A stretch of 57,357 nt of DNA, filler included, from Platydemus manokwari (Eukaryota): the NCBI GenBank assembly GCA_037951405.1. It is 5 parts of 5 records of this genome, joined end to end, with 100 filler letters (N's around TTAATTAATTAA, not from the genome) between each part and the next. Parts side by side here need not be neighbours in the genome. Positions count along the whole stretch, not along the records: positions 18,299 to 31,496 come from JBBMOY011800283.1; 4 more parts are not named here. One strand, given 5' to 3'. This document shows positions 18,299 through 31,496 of this stretch, one piece after another. Numbering within the stretch: the first letter of the stretch is position 1; every line of letters starts with the position of its first letter. Position numbers and translations under genes: made by a program. Under the pieces are notes generated by a model, which did not search any database, was not told the origin of the DNA, and was given only the letters and a program-made list of their open reading frames with translations.

Positions 18299-18421
18299 AA
18301 GCGAGTTCTGAAAGAGAAAAGGTCAGAATGGGCTGACAGACATGATAAAGTAATTTTACTACATGATAACGCCAGCCCGCATGTCCATCATATTGTAAAT
18401 AAATACTTAGAAGGTGTAAAC
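18299..18421 (+). mobile_element. Mariner transposase fragment (second family, Mos1-like)
   Basis: KRVLKEKRSEWADRHDKVILLHDNASPHVHHIVNKYLE contains the LHDNAxPH second catalytic Asp motif. Confidence 0.85.
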
Positions 18422-20204
18422 AGAGAAAATCACAGAGAAAATTATATAAAGATAAATATGAATGATCTCTTATGATAACAACAAAATAAAACTAACATTC
18501 ATCAGTCAATTTCTCCAAACTGTAAAAATGAAATAATAAATACATGTTAATATTCTTTAACAACAAATATCCTCACTTGGGAGTAATTGTAAAGACAGTA
18601 TATATAAATAATTTATAATTTATATTTATTTATTAATAAATACCATTTCTTGATACGCTGTACTTGGATAAATTAAACATATTTTACAAATAACTTGTTA
18701 TCATTTAACATAAACGTCACATGTAACTCAAACATGAAGAACTTGAGAATCTATTATAATTTGGAAATAATCAATCAATCATTACCATTATATCAATTGA
18801 AAAATCAATTTGTAAAACTGATGAATTGTGGAAAGGGAGACTTCAAAAGACGACTTCCAAAAGTCTTACCTTTTGTGAGTATTTTTATTATATTTAAAGA
18901 TATGATTTATACAGGAATATATGAATTTACCACAAAATATGTCCAATAATAATCAAAATTATTATTTATATTACGATAAAGAAAATAAAAATTGATTATG
19001 GTAATACTTTATGTGCTTACCTTGATTTTAAGTCATCAATTTTGTTTCTCATGTTCTCAAAAGCTCCATCTTTAACTAAAAAATCAATAAATCATTTATA
19101 CTAAATAATAAATCTATATATTTGTAAAAAAATATAAATATTTATAATATTATTATTATTTTAATTCAATTCAAACTTGTAAATGTTAAGAGAATTTGCA
19201 CACTTAATCATTATCAATACTGATTCACCGATGTGGTGTTTTGTAGTTCTTTCATAACTTTCAGTTTCAACTACAATTTCAGTTGACAATCTCAATTATA
19301 ATTTGACCTTATTGCTTTTTATTTTAATTTCTATTTGAGTATCTATTTTCAGAATATTCATTTCAAAATCAAAGGTAACAAAATATCGGTTTTATTATGA
19401 ATTTTAATTTGTCCAATAAAATGTCAAGAATTTATCATGGAATTAAACCATTAAGGATTCGATGATGCACACGCCCTTTTCGATTGGAATAATAAATGAA
19501 TTATAAAATAATCAGAATCAATGTTAAGTTATCGATACCATATCCATGAAAACCCAAGATTGAAAATGAGGTTTTAAGTACATTTTATTTTATTTATAAA
19601 ATTCAAGGACTGATATAATTGTTTATTCAGGAAAACATAAAACACAATAGTGTGCTTACACAAAATGAATGTTTTCAATGTAGAAAAATTTAACGATTTT
19701 TTCATATCAATAAAATTAAAAGTGTCACCAAAGAGTAGAATAAATAATGCTGAAATTCGAGATTAGGAAAAGAGAAGAATATCTCAGGATTAATATGTTT
19801 GATTTAGTCTTTTCAACACCAATTGTTAACAGATATCTTAAGAAAATCTTTCCCCTTTGTTTATTTGAATTTCATTATTTATTTATAACGTTGAGCTGAA
19901 CTGATTACTGAAAGCAAAAATATGTGATACAATTTGTGAAGCAGCTCATAAGAATTTTGTGCTTTATTCAATGAAATTAACTTGTTAAAGAAGAACTAGT
20001 TTACTTCAATTTGATTCAATTTAATGGGTTTTAAACCTCAATAATTTTGTTAATCTTATCTCTTATTATGAAAACAATGTTCAGTTCAAACAAAATAATG
20101 ACAATAATAATTATTTTATAATTTTATGCCGATCATTGCACGTCATGATAACCACGTAAAATTTTAAAATCATCGTTAGATCCATAATTAAAATTAAAAA
20201 TAAC

Positions 20205-23200
20205 CTTTACAAGATTCTTCAAGTTTTTTATTTTCTTTCATCATGGACTCCTCTGATGTATTCATAAACAATAGAATCAATCAAATAAAATTTAATTATA
20301 AAATCTCAGAATAATAATAAATATTATAAAGTACAGATTATAATAATTATTGACAAATTATATAAAACATACCCGTCACCTGCATTGATTCACTAAAATA
20401 ATGAAATCAACAAATGCTTGTCATGTAAAATATAAAAGATAATAAAACTACATCCGAATTTAAGAAATGAAATCAAATTCTTTATAATTATTAGCAACAA
20501 AACAAAACTTTCAAATTTTAGTCATGATTTTCATACAGGATAATTCATCACTGTCTTTTAATTGAGCTTTCGAGCGACTTCCAGTAAATGGGTCTTTCAA
20601 CACTCAGCATTACCACAATTTTACTGAGGAAATTTGAAGCAAAGTCTTTCGGATAATTGTTTCATAATCAGTATTATTGGTTTTACATACATCATCACTT
20701 CTGTCAGTTCTTGAAAGTAATCAATATCGAGAATATACTGTTCACATTACCAAGTATTTTTAATCTTTTCACTACCACTTTGACAGTTTTTTAATAAATT
20801 TCTGAAGCACTCGCTGTGATTTTCATTTTCATTTCAAATCTTATCATGAAAACGGATAAGCAGATCTTTATTTTTGATTCAATTTTATCAAACATTTGGT
20901 TTCATATGATTTCGACAAATGATTGTGAGAAAAGAGAATCATTTCAAATCCTAATCCAAGCACCAATTTATTAGCTACAAACAGTAATCAAACCTGAAAT
21001 ATATTTTACGATAAATTTAATTATGATTGGTCCAGAATAATGAGTTTATTGTAACAAAAATGTGCTCGATTAATAAATTTCCAATAAAATCTTCACCAAG
21101 AACTGAAAACATGGAGTTTTAGAATGTTTTACTTTTTACTTTAATGGAAATATAAATTTGTCATCATTTCATAAAAGTCGTATGGATAAGTCAGTGTTAT
21201 CGTTAACTTCATATCTAAGTAAGTTGAGAATCTCAAAGATAGAGCTATCTATATCAGTTATTAGATCTAATATTCCCGAAATCTACCAAAATCGACAATG
21301 TCAGATATCACTTGAAAATTCATTGATAACATATTTATTCTTATAAAAGTTTGGATAATTATAATTTTCTTAACAAATATTTCATTTCTTATATTTGTGC
21401 GATTCCTTATAATTTTTAATAAATATATATATTTATCGATATTCTAGTTACTGCTAACCAGATCTTTATTTTGAAATCTATTTTATCAACAAGTTGATGG
21501 AATGTCTAACAAAAATTCGATTTTGTCATTATGGATATTTGAATTACCTATATTTTATAACTTCATTGATTCTGGTGTTCAGCAACTCACAATCAAAAGT
21601 GTTCTGTGAGTTTATAAAATGGTGATAATCACAAATCTGACGTTTTGTAAAACAAAGCCCTCAAACAAACCTCAATTTGCAAATAATTGTGTAAACCTCA
21701 ATACCAGTACCAACAATCAATGGTAATTTATAACTCCAAATCAAATTTATTATATTATCTTATTAAATAACAACAAAAGATTACATTTTATCTTGTAGTG
21801 ATTGTATCTCATTATTCAAGCTTTTTATTTCTTCATCTTTATCTAAAATTAGAAAAGAATCTTCTAAATAACTAAACAGATTCATATTCACCTGTAATGA
21901 TTGATTTATTATCAAATAAAGATCCCTTCGAATTTTCAATAGAATCTCTTAATGAATTTACTACAAAAATAGAAATAAAATCGTTTTAATATTAATTTAC
22001 ATTCATCATCTTTCATTTTGATTTCATCAATAAATTTCTTTATTTGTTCATCTAAATAATAATTACTTTTAGAAAAGGCAGTTAATAAAACCATATGTAT
22101 TCAATAACTGAAAATCGATAACAAAAACAACTTAAATATAATAATAATTGAAGAGAACTTAGCACTAAGAATAATACTAAATGTCTTTAAAATTTTATTT
22201 GCTATTTACCAAAATCTTGGCTCATACCTTGTCAAGGTAATCTGAAGAAAATAATAAATGGAAATAATAAAAAATCATAAAGAAAATTTGATTAGTTCAT
22301 GGATTTCAAGTCACAGGCAAAACAAAATTATTTAATAAAATAAATTAATATTAAATAAAGTGAAACAAGCTGCTACTAAATAATTTATTTATAATAAAAT
22401 ATATTTGTACAAAAATCCCCAGATAAATTGGTAATATTAACAAACTACATAAAAGTTTAACGTGCTGGTTTTGTGCTTGAACTACGATACTAAATTCAAC
22501 GTTAATATTACATAATGTGATGAGGTTTCGACACTTTCCTGCTATTCTATCAACATCAAATTGAGTTACAATAACAATACATCATAAACTATAAGATTTT
22601 GAATCAAACAAAATTAACTAAAATAAAATTAAACCAGAAATATAGTTGCAAGGAGGGCTAGAAAATAATAGTGAAAGAAATCGAGGTCAATTACAACACT
22701 TACCAGGCTAATATGCTTTCTTACAAGGTGATTATTTCTATAGATTCATGGAGCAATTTATCTTGTAATTCATTAATTAATTGAAATACAAGAATGATTT
22801 TTAGATTGTTATGGTCAAAAAATTGACAATGATTCTAACTCTTTTTTAAGTGGTGTGAATGTTGCTGTAATTCGGAATTATCAATAAATAAAATTAAGGC
22901 TATGACATTAATATTTATTGACCCAAAAGAAAACATTGACATAATCCAACAATCAAAATATTTCATTCCTTTAACTGGGCTCAATCATCAATAAGTCATT
23001 TTGAAGAGATTTGTAGTTAAAAGTTTGTATATGTTGCTTGTGTTCGCCTCTTATTCGATGTCATGCTTTTTTGTCAATTCCAACTGAGTTCATTGATTTA
23101 TCATTACTGGGATAAACGTGTTGTTATGTAGTCACCTATTATAACCAAATTGAAATCATCGTTATAAGCTACTTCTAATTTGTCAGTTATAATTTGAATG

Positions 23201-26200
23201 TGTGTTTAATCTGAAATCAAGTGATGATCAAACATTCTCATTATCTTTCTAAATAATGAATGAGTAGCTTCAAATTTTACAAGGATCACAGTAATTTAAT
23301 CACAACAATTAAATAATATCATAATTACTAAAATTGATTTTATAAAGAAACAAAGGTTTGAAAATCCTGTTTCATTATGAGATTCAGTCTTTGTCAAATC
23401 AATAATGAGCATATTTTAATTACAAATAATTTGTTTTATTAACACTTCATATAAATGAAAAACAATAATTTACATTTTAATCTCGAAATTAATTTATTTC
23501 CATAAAAATTTATTTCATAAAAAACATTACTCAAGCAATTACCTTTAGATTCGACAGTTTTCTTTAGATTTAAAACATCTTTTCCAATGCCTAAATTAAA
23601 AAAAAGTACAAATTGAGGTTTGTAAAATAGATTTTTTGTACTTGAAATTTCATCTTCTGAAGAGGCCAATTCTTTCTTTTTTAATGCTAATAAATCAAAA
23701 GTAATTAATTAATACAATAACATCGTAAAAAGGGAAATAAAGCATAACGAATCAGATTAACTAAATTCGATTGATTAAATACTTGAAGAAAAATATATAA
23801 AAGCCCATTTACTCCGCATTTCATTTAAAAATTTGCACATAAGCTGTGAATAAATCCATGATTAAACAGAACATACTAGTGATAACAGATTGTTATTAAT
23901 ACTCAACAACAATGAGACACATAAATATTTACTTAACAAAATGTTGCTGTAGAAAATTATAATTGATTCTTAGTGTTATTTATAGTAAAATATATAAAAT
24001 TAAAATCTCAGATGCTATCAACAGAGTTGCAATAATTATTCAATATCAACGGAAAAGAGAATTGATCCATCCAGTATGATTTTCTAAAGATATGAGTGGA
24101 CAGCAATAATTCGTTTTGATTATTTACTTATTAGGAATATATACCAATTCTAGTATTTTTCATGTTTTAATTGATTGTTTATAATTCTGTTTTCAACAAC
24201 AATGGTTGCTGCTTTACAGTTCTTTTATTAAAACTGTATTAAATTCTAATTGTCGGCGAAACTTTTCATTCCAAACATATCTTTACGCCAAAATCCAAGA
24301 CACTGAATATAGACATCGAAGCAGAGCAAAACAAGGGTTTTTATGTTAATTGCAATTTATATAACTGAATTGCGAATTATTTTAAGATAAACTGTTCCAT
24401 TTTATAAGCTCGTCTATTATTAATTTCATTTTATCCAATTTAAAATACCTTGTCAAATTGTATGATTTCAACATCATGTTATAAAAGTTCAAATCTTCAC
24501 TTTGTTTTAATAGTTATAATTTATCAAACTATTCATTCAAATTAAACAGTTAATTATCAATAAATGATTCGAGCTTTTACAAGATTCCATTTCATTCAAT
24601 TAATTATTAAAATATCAGATAAATTAAATCTTTCAGAAATTTTTCAAGCCAAATTGATTTCTTTTGGTACAATAAAATGAAATCAACATCAAAAACTCGT
24701 GCAAATTCTTACAAATCAAGTATTAGATTAACACAAGTCGATACTTGTTTCGACTATTCTGACCAAAAACTCTACAATTATATTTACGGATTAAAAAGCA
24801 ATGTTTTACAAACTTGAGGCTGTGGAACAAACACATATTTCGTCACGGAGACTCGTGCAATCAACATATTATTAAAATAAAATGTGAACAATACTGGTAA
24901 ATATGTTGCAAATTATTGAAATTCTTAACTTTATTTCGTTTGAAGTACCACTACACCTAGCGAAGAAATCAAGTAACAATAACATTGATGACAATCTCCC
25001 TTTTAGTTTAGTTATTCATTTCTATTAATCTATGACAAATGCTTTTAAGAAGAAAGAGCTTGAAGGATGATATCATGTAGATAATTTGTTTAAGATATTC
25101 GAAATTTTATTCTTTTCATAACTGAAAACCAGTTTAGTACAAATGACTCGTGAATTTTTAGCTTAACAAAGAGAAGTATATGAATTTCGATGGGATCTTG
25201 ATTAAAAACCATTTCTATAAAAGTTATTACCAATGAAAAACGAATATAAATAAAAATAAATACAAAATAAAATAAAAATTATATATATAATATCCCAAGT
25301 AAAAAGGTAAGGAGAAATATTCAATACAATAACAATTCATAAAATTATTTTAAAAAGTCTACCCGTGGTTTTCTTTTTAATTTTTGATTCTAATTTTTGG
25401 ATACGTTCGCTCATCTCATTTTTTTCTGAACATAGTGTAATCAACATTAACTAATACATGCAAATAAATTTTAACCTTCGGTTAGTTCATCGCATTGTGA
25501 TTTAATATTTCTAAGGTCTCTTTTCAACGCGGTTCTTTCATTTACAAGTTCTAAATAACGAAAATATTTAATAAAATCGAACAGAATGTTATATTTGTAT
25601 TCAGGGTATCAGCTGAAAGCTTAAAACCCAACACACATAAAACTAATACTAGAAGAATAAATAATAATTATCCAAATCAAATTTTGTGTCACAGGATAAT
25701 GATAATAGGAATGATTTTAAAATGTTTTACATTTAACAATGTAAACAAAACCAATTAAGCAAATAGAGTCTAAACGTAAGAAGGGCGTCGAATATGTATA
25801 AACCAATTAAATATGTGTAAATATCGAGTATACAATTATAAATGATTGCCAACTACTTAAAATAGAGAAAAATAAAATAATTTAAATAATGAGGTAGAAC
25901 AATATATAATCTCTTCAAGCTCTATTGAGAAGTAATATCAGTTTTAAAGCAAATAAGTATGAAAAGAACATAGCTTGATAATGAATCTAAACAGTGAAAC
26001 CAAAACCATCATAATCTACAATCAGACAATTTATAACTTATAAATCATAATCAATAATATATTTATATATTGTGACAAGTGATGTTACAATCAGTTTAAA
26101 CAAAAATAGAAAACCAATGGACCAATTTAAGGATATTTAATAGAAAATAATCTTATTCCTTAATTTATTTCTGTAATTAATTAATAAATAATTAATCCAA

Positions 26201-26613
26201 TAATATTAGGATCTCATAAAATTTTATCCTATAAATATTGGCTAAATTATCATTCATTATCATAATTTATTATTATCATTAATTATATTGTTATAATTTA
26301 TTATTATCATTAATTATATTACTGACTGATCGCCATGAATTCCAATTCCTCGTATACAAACATTAATAAATAATACCTTCATTTTCTTTTTCCAATGACT
26401 CATTTTCGTCACTCAATGTTTTAATTTTCATCTGATATTTTCTATTAGCTGGATCAAGAGATTGATATCCATATTCATCTGTTTTATCGAACGTTTTACT
26501 ATTTCATTTTACATTCTTTATGTATATATTCGATATTATGATAAATGTCTTACTTTTGTGATTTTTCCAAAGCTTTAATTTCTAAAGATTTCTTTTCCAG
26601 AGCATCTTTTTGA
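20205..26613 (-). CDS. Multi-exon coiled-coil protein gene with micro-exons, partly degenerate
   Basis: Short AG/GT-bounded exons encode QKDALEKKSLEIKALEKSQ, QMKIKTLSDENESLEKKMK, ELVNERTALKRDLRNIKSQCDELTE, EKNEMSERIQKLESKIKKK, DEQIKKFIDEIKMKDDE, DKDEEIKSLNNEIQSLQDK and VHDEENKKLEESCK. May represent more than one gene. Confidence 0.5.
24010..25200 (+). pseudogene. Possible degenerate cadherin relic inside an intron of the coiled-coil gene
   Basis: Fragments ISTEKRID, HIFTPKSKTLNIDIE, YKLEAVE and IDDNLPF; heavily disrupted. Confidence 0.25.
26262..26320 (+). repeat. 31-bp-period tandem duplication
   Basis: ataatttattattatcattaattatatt occurs twice. Confidence 0.8.
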
Positions 26614-27117
26614 CTAAATTAAAAGGCAATTTGATGAATTTTAATCAATAATCTGATTTGCATTGCAGTACGAAATTAATTGACATGAACAATAAAAAGA
26701 TTCAGCTTGAATATTATTTATTTATTTTAATTAAAATCACAAATAAAATTATTCAATTCATTGTTATAGTCAGTTTAACGTAAAAACTATAAAGATTGTT
26801 TGAAATTTATTTTTATTAAAGATTTTCAAATAGGTTCACAGAATTTAAAAATCATTCAATAACAAATGCAAACCAACAGCAACATCTAACATAAAACACT
26901 CGATAATTATTTGATAGTATGAAAGTTATCAATAATTTTTAACAACTTCAATAAAGAAAAGCCAACTTTTTCATCACTTTTGACTCCAAATGTTTCATAA
27001 TTCACTTTTCCTCAATGCTTAAATTAATTATTTGAATTTTCAGGTAAATATTAATATTATTCAGATAGTATAAAACAAAATGAAGAATAAAATTTAAAAT
27101 AGTTGTGGATACATTTC

Positions 27118-28095
27118 CTAAATTGTGATGTATGATAATAAAATGCATTTTTCCAGTTTATTCATCAGAGTTTCCATGTCGATGAACAGTTCTTCTGTTG
27201 AATTATGTAGCTTCATAGAGAATTTCACTCCTAGATAGCGATAGTGCTCTTCTAGATTGATTGTAGAAATTTTCTCATTGTGGATCAGGAATTCCGCCGC
27301 GTTAGTACTTGATCTTTGATTATGTAAGTGCCCACATTTTGATGGTTTGAACTTGAAACCAAGAAGGAACCCCAGCGCTGATGCCTCATTGATCATCATT
27401 TGGAAAACATTTTGATTTTTATCAATAATTGCATAGACAAGGCATGAAATTCGATTATTTTCAATTATCAGGCCTCCAATAAGACAGTTGTCCATTTGTA
27501 CCAAGATTGGATTGATGGCTATGTTGAATAAAAGCATGGAAATCGGGCAGCCCTGTCGGACAGCCCAATCAATTTTAATTGGTTTCGTTTCATAATATGC
27601 GCATTTAAGAGACGTTTGGCAGTCTATGTAGAGACTTCTTATGATTTTGATGGCAGTTTCAGTCAATCCCATATGCTCAAGGATTGTGAACATCGCTTCA
27701 AGATTTAATGAAGGAAAGGCTTCTCCTATGTCTAAGAATCCGATGTGAACATTATCGATATTTCTCTTGCTGTGTTCTTCTATAATGGCTCGAAATAAAA
27801 AGTTGTGTATTAAGTTGTTTTCATCAATCCAATCTTTCAGTTGTTTGTACAGAATAGTTGTGAAAATTTTATAGCTGCAGTTGAGCAGAGCAATAGGGCG
27901 CCAGGAGTTGACTTGATGATAGTGACCTTCTTTCATGGGTTTCGGTATCATCAATGTTGTAAATGTTTTTCATTCATCTGGTATTTCTTGGTTACATAGA
28001 CATTTTGGAAAATCTTGTGTATGACTTTTGTCTCTGGATCTGCATATAGAATATCTTTATAATTGATCTTGTTTTTTCCAGAAGCACTTTTTCCA
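27118..28095 (-). pseudogene. Non-LTR reverse transcriptase domain
   Basis: IPDE*KTFTTLMIPK, WRPIALLNCSYKIF, FLDIGEAFPSL, VRQGCPISMLLFNIAI, LVYA (the DD of YADD is deleted), KPSKC and YRYLGV. Confidence 0.93.
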
Positions 28096-28689
28096 AATGG
28101 TTGTATAAATTATTTCTGGTTCTATTATGCTGATGTCGAAATTTTGGCCCCTTTTAGTAAGTTTCTTTAGTGAACAAAAATTTTACATGCTTTCGTACAC
28201 GATCCTACACAATCAGGAAGATCTGCTTTTTGCTTCTGTTTTTCTTCGAACTGTTTTCGAAGTCTTTTTGAATAAATTGACAGTCAACTTTTGTGTATTG
28301 CGTGGCTCATTCAAAGGCAGCAGATGGAGAGTGGTTAAACAGTCTCCTTAGTTTTAGGTCTGTTTCATCTCCTTTTTCATTATTAGCTCTACCCAAGTAT
28401 GTGTTACTTGATTATTTAATTGTGCAGACACAGCGAATAAATTCACATTATTTCCTAAACATTTAATCTACTGTTTTATTTGTAAAGTTGTTGGCCAATC
28501 CTTCTGCTAATGATTTCCTGATTTCAAATGTATCTTTTGGGCAAAAATCAGGAATGTACATTAGTTGTTCTCCTCTCTTGAGCTTCCATTCATGCTCAAG
28601 GATCGCCTTATTAGGTTTTTTCTTTATTCTCTTTATATTTATTCTCATAAGTTGGAAATTATGGCTGATTTTCAAATACCATTGACTAG

Positions 28690-29110
28690 CTTTCTCCAAA
28701 ATTGCACTGTATCAGTCTGGGTTTTGTAGGCTCAATTTCTTTCAGACCTTTTTCTTCCATATCATCATAAAAATATTTCTATTTAGATTACTGAGTAATT
28801 TTGTTTTTTGATCATCTGTATCATCACCTCTAGGGTCCAGTAATTGAATTGATTTTTCTGTTATAAATATTATCACTAGAATCCAGCGTTTAGAATTCAT
28901 CAGAAGTGGACAAAAAATAATTTCCCTGTTTTTGAAATACTGGAACGACAGGAATTCCAGAACATCTTCAACGTCATCGATTCCGAGGGCTCTACCAATA
29001 AAAGGATCGAGTACTAGAAATTTTCGACATTGAAATTCTTTTTTACATAAGGCGATCATGTGTCTTTTCGTAAAGAGGATATGGTCATCTTGATTTTATG
29101 CAGTTGCCTG
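28690..29110 (-). pseudogene. Ulp1/SENP-like C48 protease domain 2 of the retroelement
   Basis: A*NQDDHIL..., FLVLDPF, IIFCPLLMNSKRWILVIIFITEKSIQLLDPRG (HW appears as RW), and a frameshifted QTDT.NFG (QxDxxNCG-like). Same frame as domain 1 across a single stop at 29096-29098. Confidence 0.75.
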
Positions 29111-29149
29111 TCCCACCCCTGTTAATTTGTTAATCAAATCTTCCGAAAT

Positions 29150-29665
29150 GTTTTGTTTACATTTTCTTCTGATGGTTTTGACGTCTATGTCTATGCAAGA
29201 TTGGTTATTAGCTACACAATCAATGCGGCCGCATATTAATGGGCCACAGTCAAAGTTATTTTTTTCTAATTGCCGTTCTTTCTTATAAAAGAAGTTTCTT
29301 TTTATCTTTGAGTTTTTCCAAATTATGTTTTTGTATTTGAGTGTGTTGCATGTCCTCTTCGCTTTGATTTCAGCTTCATTTAAAAATTTGTCACTACTCA
29401 ATGGGTCAAGTATACCTCCCCCAAATGGGTAGATCACTAGCATCGTGCAGTGTTGGTTTTGTACGTTAATTAGGGCAAGGGCTGTTGTACATGTTGAGCT
29501 TCATGGCATTGATACCAACTTTACTGAGATTGGTTCCATTTGTAATTAATTCTGCAACATAGCTACTGTTGAACTTGCAATCATTTAACTGAACATGTTT
29601 TCACCCATATTTATCAATCTGGTCTCCGAAGAACCATTCGGTATAAGACAGTGAGGCCCTTTTGT
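29150..29665 (-). pseudogene. Ulp1/SENP-like C48 protease domain 1 of the retroelement
   Basis: SLSYTEWFFGDQIDKY (LxxxxWLxDxxIxxY-like), INVQNQHCTMLVI (His at 29450-29452), GILDPL, and QLEKNNFDCGPLIC (Cys at 29246-29248). Confidence 0.82.
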
Positions 29666-31496
29666 TCGCTTCGGACGAGGCCAAAATGAGATCCCATCAA
29701 AAGTCAGATTCTGTGTAGCTCGCAGTGCAAGACAAGGAGTACTCCTGACTATCTAACAACCTTGAGCTGGGGATGGTTGACAGGGATCGATTCTTGTTTG
29801 CGTTTTTTGGCGTCGACTCCATGGCCTATTTATCCATTAGGCTCAGCATTTTTTCTTGAATCGTAGTGAACTTTTTGATTTTGACTTTTTTAATCACTGC
29901 AATCGGTACTTCCTCTTGAGATGCACATGTTTCTTGAGTTTTATTTTTTTGTATTCTGCCATGAGTTCGTCCTCCATTTTTTCCTTTTCTAATTCAAATC
30001 TTTTGATGAGTTGGGTAGCATAAGACCTATTTTTTGCCGTGGAAAGACCGTAGAACTTATCCAATACTATCGCATTATCAATTCTCATTGACGATAAAAG
30101 AGATGTTGCCGTGTTGATTTTAAGATATATTGCAGTGGAATGTGAGTTCGATTCATTCTCCAAGTCTGTGGTAGGCACCTCTGTTTGCGCAGCTGAGCTA
30201 ATCATTTCGAGGTTTGTCTCTTTATCTTATATTCTAGTCTTGCTTACATTTGTGTTGAGGATATCCAGCTTCACGTGATTTGTGGTTACTATATCAAGAT
30301 CAACGTCGTTCAATTGTTTGGCAATAAGATTCACGATGTTTTCCGAGCTATTGCCAAAATCAATTATATTGTATGAGTTTTGATCGTCCAGGTTACTTTT
30401 TTATTTATCATCATTCAAAGTATTAGTTGGCCAAAATATATCTTTTAGAGTTTCAGTAACCTTATCTTCTACTCCATAATTACGAAGATTATTTTTGAAT
30501 TGCAATAGTGCGTCGTTATTCGTTAATCCTGGGATATTATTAGGATTACAGATGGGAACCTTAGCATTTGTTTTCATGTTCGCTAGCATCACTGTGCTGT
30601 CTTTTTCCCTTTCTCTGAGAGTTTTCTGAATTTATTTAAAATTGTTTTGAGATGCGGTTTATCTTTTAGCGATCCGATGTCAATGTTAAGAGACCATGAC
30701 TTGTGGGAGTTAAAAGTAGCAGGAATAAGGGGTCTCCGTTTTTCCTTGGAATGAATTTCATTTTTTCTTTCATCTTTCAATATGTGAAAATTTTGTTTTC
30801 GTTTTTTGATTTTCTGATTTAATCTGTAGGGTATAACCTCGTGAGCCAGATTCCTTTCTGGAGTTTCGTCGTGTTTTTCTCCTTATCATATTGAAACCTT
30901 TATCATCAAGTGTGTTTGGATGTGGTTCCTTGTTTGAATTCATGTTGTAGATGTTATCGCTTGATTTCCATATGCTTGAAATTTATTTACTATGACCATC
31001 CTTCCAGTTCACAGATTTTGCAACATTTGAATAGGATGGTCTTGCATTGAAGTGATATTGTCTGTTCTCTAAGTGAGAGTATTCATCCGTATTTTCAATC
31101 GGGTAATTCGTTAAGAATTGCTCCAAATCTCCGGCCAACTGATTTAGTTGTTTGTGCCCATTTAGCGTACCATTTCCTCCAGCTTCAAAGCTAGAGGGTT
31201 GTGATCTTCTGTAAGCATTTCTCTCTGTCTCTGGTCATTGTAAGGCTGGTAAACATTTTTTAAGTGCTCGTCGTAATTGTCAAACCTTTCGAGTTACGTT
31301 TCATACTTACAAAGATCAAAGTGACATCTTTTCTCACACAAAGTGGTATAACGCTGATTATATCGAGATATTTTAATATGTGATAAAATAAGAATCTATA
31401 TTCGAATAATGAAATTGTAAGGCTTTAAACCTAAATTAAATAATTTTGAAATTAAAATTAAAAAATTAAAAATTAAAATTGAATTATTTTACAATC

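Follow-up and report, generated by a model that had tools for sequence, protein, structure and literature searches.

A dead retrotransposon copy in the genome of Platydemus manokwari belongs to a repeat family whose protein is predicted to carry, ahead of its reverse transcriptase (RT), an active protease of the Ulp1/SENP type (C48) followed by a second unit of the same fold that appears to have lost catalysis. The copy lies on the minus strand of JBBMOY011800283.1, one of the five joined genome parts that make up a 57,357-nucleotide window from assembly GCA_037951405.1, and the analysis covered the part of the window that comes from this record (positions 18299-31496) on both strands. In our best explanation, which we regard as probable, it is the remnant of an element without long terminal repeats (a non-LTR element) of the restriction-like endonuclease (RLE) type, whose open reading frame (ORF) encoded, in order, an active Ulp1/SENP unit (unit 1), a Gly-Gly junction, a pseudo-protease (unit 2), a linker and the RT (Table 1).

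Two C48-fold units stand before the reverse transcriptase

The presence of two C48-fold units upstream of the RT, claimed in an earlier note made from the sequence alone, was borne out by profile searches and by a fold model of unit 2. The note had expected two matches to the Pfam profile Peptidase_C48 (PF02902), and two separate ones were obtained, both below the gathering score: 29099-29500(-) for unit 1 (E 0.013, profile positions 90-215, 15.8 bits against a cut-off of 20.7) and 28745-29095(-) for unit 2 (E 0.0014, profile positions 79-134). Relatives pass this cut-off, unlike the window unit-1 piece alone, and a sequence search of the PDB with the two window C48 pieces alone gave no match. 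Hidden Markov models (HMMs) built from the upstream and downstream C48 units of RT relatives matched the same two pieces at E 8e-12 (unit-1 model on 29099-29500) and E 2.3e-22 (unit-2 model on 28745-29095), and beyond these two, no match at E <0.05 was found with either model among the 276 stop-free pieces from both strands of 18299-31496. Window unit 2 scored 73 bits with its own model versus 30 with the unit-1 model. In the ESM Atlas, the piece 28745-29095 grouped with clusters of the C48 family (score 0.95); 28 of the 30 matches belonged to that family set.

An AlphaFold 2 model of the 117-residue unit-2 piece, computed from ten aligned rows, reached a predicted local distance difference test (pLDDT) score of 84 and a predicted template modelling score (pTM) of 0.76. 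When this model was compared with solved structures using Foldseek, Ulp1 came first (2hkp, 2hl8 and 1euv; TMq 0.64-0.72, root-mean-square deviation 2.4-2.6, probability 1.0), followed by SENP2, SENP1, SENP8 and SENP5. The fold matches also included two complexes of Cys-to-Ser SENP mutants with SUMO (2g4d and 5aek) and the poxvirus I7L core protease.

Unit 1 is of the active type. Its His (29450-52), Asp (29405-07) and Cys (29246-48) occur in the canonical order, together with the W-motif WFFGDQIDKY (29607-29636). The catalytic triad described in the earlier note therefore stands; the Gln listed with it does not, as the canonical position (29264-66) holds Glu, and the Trp that should follow the His is replaced by Cys. 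Every aligned relative keeps HW, D, Q and DCG in this unit.

Unit 2 is probably a pseudo-protease

The motifs of window unit 2 are FTKRHM (29057-74), KRW (28883-91), an Asp (28835-37), NFG (28695-703) and a C-terminal helix, INIKRIKK (28619-42). Two of these differ from what had been read before: the N-terminal motif given as 'DDHI' is FTKRHM once relatives are aligned, and 'QTD..NFG' mixes two frames, the box reading 'CNFGES' in one. At the position of the catalytic His (28886-28888) the window has Arg, within KRW, which compares with SRW in relative P0006, and at that of the nucleophile (28698-28700) it has Phe, within NFG; true proteases have Cys there, and the relatives read DSG. The loss is not confined to this decayed copy. 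In a nine-row alignment of tandem relatives (A1) the nucleophile position is Ser in all nine rows (S332 of P0153) and its 'LIC' neighbours are invariant, while the His position may be H, Y, K, R, L or G (Arg in P0006, Leu in P0151). The Gln has disappeared, whereas most rows retain the Asp and also the Trp next to the His position. With Ser invariant and His variable in the aligned tandem relatives, the 'HW and NCG' that had been anticipated for unit 2 in a family consensus are unlikely. With Ser or Phe in place of the catalytic Cys and a variable His, unit 2 has the fold without the status of an active member, and it is best read from these residues as a conserved pseudo-protease, a Ulp1 fold that lacks the catalytic Cys and often the His as well. 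The pairing of an active protease with a pseudo-protease, one of the options raised earlier, fits this pattern of a retained triad in unit 1 and Ser with a variable His in unit 2 of the relatives.

Several points weigh against this reading. In P0010, which belongs to the RT clade of the window, the RT-proximal unit still has its His, Asp and Cys, so that catalytic loss is not universal. Unit 2 is also the least conserved region of the protein (mean pairwise identity 18.9%, compared with 26.7% in unit 1 and 39.7% in the RT), which would allow it to be merely a tolerated relic, and its residue states come from one decayed copy and from relatives rather than from intact copies of the window's own family. 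As regards what the pair might act on, Ulp1-type enzymes normally require the folded body of SUMO, a point against cleavage of a bare Gly-Gly linker.

The tandem is shared by a clade of relatives

Relatives are proteins from Logan and JGI/ENA assemblies that were found by exhaustive search with the window RT piece. They share up to 47% RT identity with the window, and the nearest (40-47%) have the same domain order. When the six nearest long RT relatives were scanned with Pfam, each gave both C48 and RVT_1; Pfam reported two C48 stretches in P0004 and P0153, and the window unit-1 and unit-2 pieces aligned in the same order to successive regions of P0004, P0013 and P0009. The family HMMs found two units in P0001, P0004, P0007, P0009/P0152, P0013/P0153 and P0018, whereas P0012, P0015 and P0016 gave three. 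Since the unit models also match across units (E 1e-13 to 1e-18), the units are paralogues. A search of the Atlas with P0153 returned clusters with C48 and RVT_1.

In a quick IQ-TREE phylogeny of 71 RT rows, restricted to database proteins, the window falls in a 16-row clade (SH-aLRT branch support 95) with all two-unit elements except P0018, its nearest rows being P0001 and P0007. The sister clade holds the three-unit elements and the two-unit P0018, and a third clade holds elements with an active-type RT-proximal unit; among the remaining rows a C48 unit occurs only in P0049. The tandem is an old feature at the level of the family or clade, for which the simple reading, part of the explanation that we consider probable, is a duplication within the lineage followed by loss of catalysis in the RT-proximal copy.

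More distant sequence collections yielded little. A metagenome scan with A1 recovered 80 RT loci, none of them above 30% identity, among which no tandem element was seen and C48 occurred only once, as a single unit. A word-index protein search gave no match with the unit-2 piece and, with residues 1-400 of P0153, only the cluster of P0153 itself.

Some relatives depart from the two-unit outline. P0012, P0015 and P0016 (~1,540 aa) have one active-type and two degenerate C48-like units before the RT, which indicates that the C48 array grew more than once, and their last unit reads 'FSN' at the Cys box, as does unit 2 of P0018. The RT-proximal unit of P0010 (1,089 aa; residues 1-149) has 'GHRM', 'IDP' and 'LDCGP', and the ORF begins inside it. 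P0007 (2,421 aa) bears a long Ser/Asn-rich extension before unit 1 (residues 1-1105) in which Pfam found no domain. The single-unit metagenome locus (L001:765-4220 (+), contig Ga0073919_1000541) is a NeSL-like element with a single protease from an environmental sample; its ORF of 1,152 codons, 28% identical to P0153, comprises C48 (residues 14-163, E 7e-9 to the unit-1 HMM), RT and a C-terminal part.

Possible working of the two-unit module

In SENP and Ulp1 enzymes the diglycine tail of SUMO passes along a tunnel between two Trp residues, of which one stands beside the catalytic His, as seen in SENP1 and SENP2 structures, and Cys-to-Ser SENP mutants hold SUMO uncut. In our proposal, unit 1 would be a protease for diglycine-ended substrates. 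It would most resemble the SUMO proteases, as the N-terminal part of the A1 profile is closest to Ulp1 (E 4.5e-13), SENP2 and SENP1 (both ~1e-11), with SENP8 weaker (1e-5). Unit 2 would be its non-catalytic partner, which keeps the fold, the Asp and the Trp beside the lost His and which may bind, and not cut, a diglycine-ended ligand. That ligand might be a SUMO conjugate at the integration site, in which case unit 2 could tether the RT-endonuclease or help to clear its way, or it might be the element's own Gly-Gly junction, which would amount to self-processing. The pairing of the two units could equally be explained by either ligand. A complex prediction for unit 1 of P0153 (residues 14-186) against its junction and unit 2 (187-385) scored 0.00, a 'no answer' that speaks neither for nor against binding.

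The junction itself is a recurrent feature. Tandem relatives carry Gly-Gly(-Gly), often as 'KGGG', 44-47 residues after the unit-1 Cys at the very end of the domain (n=9 independent elements: P0153, P0152, P0004, P0001, P0007, P0012, P0015, P0016 and P0151), with GSG in P0018; in the window the site reads TGVG. No GG(G) motif follows the unit of the single-unit clade P0014/P0021-P0030 in the alignment.

Taken furthest, the proposal envisages a two-part SUMO module across the clade, made of an active Ulp1-type protease, a Gly-Gly junction and a natural Cys-to-Ser 'trap' paralogue that has kept the tunnel Trp, an extension that we put forward only tentatively. Such a trap would serve either to keep the RT-endonuclease at the target, bound to chromatin or proteins that carry SUMO, or to hold the Gly-Gly tail of the protease after self-cleavage. 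If true, this would be an element-encoded reader and eraser of SUMO, which is not known to have been described for any transposon. A conserved pairing of an active unit with a dead, Ser-substituted one through a diglycine motif would in itself matter for the ways in which retrotransposons cope with chromatin and SUMO-dependent silencing, and it would add a natural enzyme/pseudo-enzyme tandem to the CE protease clan.

Alternative explanations

It is possible, if doubtful, that the protease only processes the element's own polyprotein at the Gly-Gly junction and has no dealings with host SUMO, in the manner of viral CE-clan proteases of the Ulp1/adenain type; adenain, pS273R of African swine fever virus (ASFV) and poxvirus I7L cut at GG-X or AG-X. 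The fixed distance of GG(G) from unit 1 in the tandem elements, its absence after the single unit of the P0014/P0021-P0030 clade, the presence of L, I or V at P4 in several elements (LxGG or ITGG) and the appearance of I7L among the fold matches all favor this view. However, in sequence unit 1 comes nearest to Ulp1, SENP1 and SENP2, which are SUMO-specific, both the single-unit relatives and NeSL-1 have a protease without such a junction, and the junction may be a mere flexible hinge.

Rather improbable, in our judgment, is that unit 2 is a functionless relic of the duplication, tolerated as a spacer between protease and RT. Its conservation, the lowest of all regions, the loss of His, Gln and Cys, and the still greater degeneration of the extra units in the sister clade are what would be seen in such a case. 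Conversely, its length, order and fold persist among elements that share only 32-53% RT identity, the Ser and 'LIC' are invariant, and the Trp beside the lost His has been retained; the unit-2 model folds confidently from a ten-row alignment, and the ORFs of relatives run intact through the unit.

We think it unlikely that both units are active in intact members of the family and that the Arg and Phe of window unit 2 reflect decay of this copy. The window copy has many mutations, its commonest differences from other copies being C>T and G>A, and the RT-proximal unit of P0010 does have H, D and C. Against this stand the Ser shared by all nine aligned tandem relatives, the occurrence of Arg (P0006) and Leu (P0151) at the His position, akin to the window Arg, and the far better fit of window unit 2 to the unit-2 HMM.

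That the second unit is a different nested element or a separately captured host gene can be set aside: although the two window units share little direct identity (blastp E 0.3), relatives on many contigs unrelated to one another show them in this order and at this spacing, their HMMs cross-match and repeat depth is continuous across the junction. Of the two origins suggested earlier, an old duplication is supported by the shared order at 40-47% RT identity, whereas double capture, like nested insertion, is ruled out by the clade-wide order in RT relatives and the tree.

The element copy, its repeat family and its decay

The feature coordinates are collected in Table 1. Most of 18299-31496 is rich in adenine and thymine (~21-28% GC), the exception being 27300-31300 (33-40% GC). 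On the minus strand of this GC-richer block, long stop-free stretches in three frames can be chained into one path (~31234 -> 27121); on the plus strand of 18299-31496, no stop-free stretch exceeds 74 codons.

Table 1 Features of the retrotransposon copy, in positions of the window
Feature	Position	Strand	Basis and remarks
Retrotransposon copy, homologous to other family copies	27132..31291	-	Contig alignments; 5' end approximate; 3' end cut off within the RT thumb
Basic N-terminal region, no recognisable domain	29700..31234	-	Stop-free stretches of 57-110 codons, this strand only
C48/Ulp1 unit 1, active type	29123..29636	-	Pfam, family HMM, alignment with relatives
Junction 'TGVG' between the units	29111..29122	-	Site of the conserved Gly-Gly(-Gly) in tandem relatives
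C48 unit 2, predicted pseudo-protease	28619..29074	-	Pfam, family HMM, Atlas, AlphaFold 2/Foldseek, alignments
Linker from unit 2 to RT, heavily frame-shifted	27970..28618	-	At 28035-28088, N-terminal extension motif of the RT, SASGKNKINYKDILYADP
Reverse transcriptase, fingers and palm	27121..27969	-	283 stop-free codons; cut off after 27132

The family is a very abundant, high-copy repeat. In one public sequencing run, 1,775 contigs lie on 27092-31355 at a likeness of at least 80%, the threshold at which contigs were counted, and summed word depth is ~420-1,600 over 27092-31191, ~183 in the bin 31192-31355, where homology tapers, and ~10-17 outside. The furthest 5' support for family homology is one contig that aligns up to 31291. 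Depth over the RT is two to three times that over the 5' part of the element, as expected of long interspersed element (LINE) copies truncated at their 5' ends. No RNA run contained the stretch.

The copy present here is dead and 3'-truncated, an ordinary repeat that is itself without function. Its end had been placed at 27118; homology in fact ends at 27132, where 21 contigs continue with other sequence reading '...QKLRAFELF', which corresponds to the 'PWQK...' thumb motif of relatives. Since other copies run on with the thumb motif, the present one lacks its 3' part, for which no replacement was found in 18299-27131. The path from 31234 to 27121 is interrupted by some ten in-frame stops and a similar number of frame changes; six of the frame changes (28750, 28007, 28180, 28253, 29949 and 30618) coincide with 1-base insertions or deletions relative to other copies. 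Frame changes at such positions fit one ancestral ORF of ~1,370 codons, the decayed minus-strand ORF proposed in the earlier note. Broken frames were bridged with X for alignment only. Single contigs also contain derivatives of the family with internal deletions, one skipping 29005-29495 and another 29204-30363.

Reverse transcriptase, linker and N-terminal region

The window RT was recognized by Pfam (RVT_1, 27121-27969(-), E 2.6e-18) and is 43% identical to that of P0001 (E 1e-76) with two in-frame gaps, which remove 15 residues of motif 2a and both Asp of the YADD box. The linker before it is ~215 residues long, and the piece 27954-28109 matches the region just upstream of the RT in P0001, P0010, P0007 and P0004 (blastp), where the A1 consensus for the RT N-terminal extension motif is 'SAPGxxNITYRD..DP'.

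The basic N-terminal region (~480 codons) gave no match to Pfam and does not resemble what relatives have at their N-termini, including the long one of P0007. It was found in the window's family only, the relatives beginning just upstream of unit 1 or with an unrelated N-terminus, and it may either have extended the ORF at its N-terminus or have formed an ORF1 of its own.

Classification and comparison with known elements

The non-LTR nature of the element, as first proposed, is upheld by its RT, which among PDB proteins is closest to R2 (E 3e-15; L1 ORF2p ~1e-9); the A1 profile likewise matches R2 proteins best (E 8e-110, in two stretches; L1 ORF2p 1e-39). Complete relatives continue after the RT with the thumb, a CCHC zinc finger and a PD-(D/E)xK restriction-like endonuclease. 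P0153 (1,382 aa) and P0152 (1,324 aa), in which unit 1 is preceded by only 10-20 residues, have 'CRRC...H....C' and 'R.D...D.K' at their ends, and in A1 the zinc ligands C1132, C1135, H1144 and C1149 as well as D1195, D1212 and K1214 (P0153 numbering) are invariant. The finger and the endonuclease are absent from the window copy, which ends inside the thumb. No Exo_endo_phos (apurinic-type endonuclease) match was found by Pfam in any window piece or in 13 relatives, and neither RNase H nor a zinc-finger N-terminus was seen in the scanned relatives. An RT and a family profile closer to R2 than to L1, together with the invariant CCHC and endonuclease residues of relatives, point to the RLE type, and as part of our probable explanation we predict an RLE-type element with an R2/NeSL-like outline. 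The likeness to NeSL rests on the Ulp1-like protease N-terminal to the RT.

To our knowledge, the Ulp1-like protease of NeSL-type elements has been known since 2000 and its function has never been shown. R2 proteins lack a protease and bear DNA-binding domains of the zinc-finger and Myb kinds at their N-terminus. They are nevertheless the best solved relatives of the RT and C-terminal part (PDB 9nl2, 9nl3, 9dou, 8gh6 and 8ibw), with the CCHC finger and PD-(D/E)xK endonuclease in common. A Ulp1-like cysteine protease N-terminal to the RT is a feature of the NeSL clade, and NeSL-1 of Caenorhabditis elegans and Utopia-1_TSP of Trichinella have the outline common to the window's relatives (PMC4640811). 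Both are described with one protease domain, whereas here there are two C48-fold units (three in the sister group), the RT-proximal one is predicted to have no catalytic activity and the units are separated by a GG(G) junction. Site-specific insertion into a multicopy RNA gene or another repeat is a mark of the NeSL clade; the flanks of the window copy showed neither a spliced-leader nor a U2 target. Flatworm RLE-type elements placed near NeSL, R5 and LIN_SM of planarians (PMC4640811), are likened to it by description only; they target 28S rRNA or tRNA genes, neither of which occurs in 18299-31496, where no Rfam family and no tRNA was found. Dualen-1_GCr of cryptophytes is another non-LTR element reported with a C48 peptidase, RT, CCHC and RLE (PMC5029228). 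It differs in three further domains, an apurinic-like endonuclease, RNase H and SET, which were found neither in the window nor in the scanned relatives.

Among cellular proteins, Ulp1, SENP1 and SENP2 (PF02902, MEROPS C48) share the His, Asp, Gln and Cys motifs with unit 1 of the relatives and the fold with both units. Unit 2 differs from them in lacking the Cys nucleophile and often the His, and in this it resembles the engineered Cys-to-Ser SENP mutants that were crystallized with SUMO (2g4d, 5aek). Full-text searches of the literature returned no description of a tandem C48, a dead second unit or a Gly-Gly junction in a non-LTR element, although a Repbase entry may exist.

Other observations

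AT-rich tandem repeats occur at 31433-31495 (periods 21/15), adjoining the 5' side of the element, and at 26245-26321 (31/13/10 bases). At the far edge of the piece, a plus-strand stop-free stretch (18299-18472), cut by that edge and without a significant Pfam match (only OrfB_IS605, E 0.076), reads '...VILLHDNASPHVHH...', which resembles the DDE motif of mariner/Tc1 transposases.

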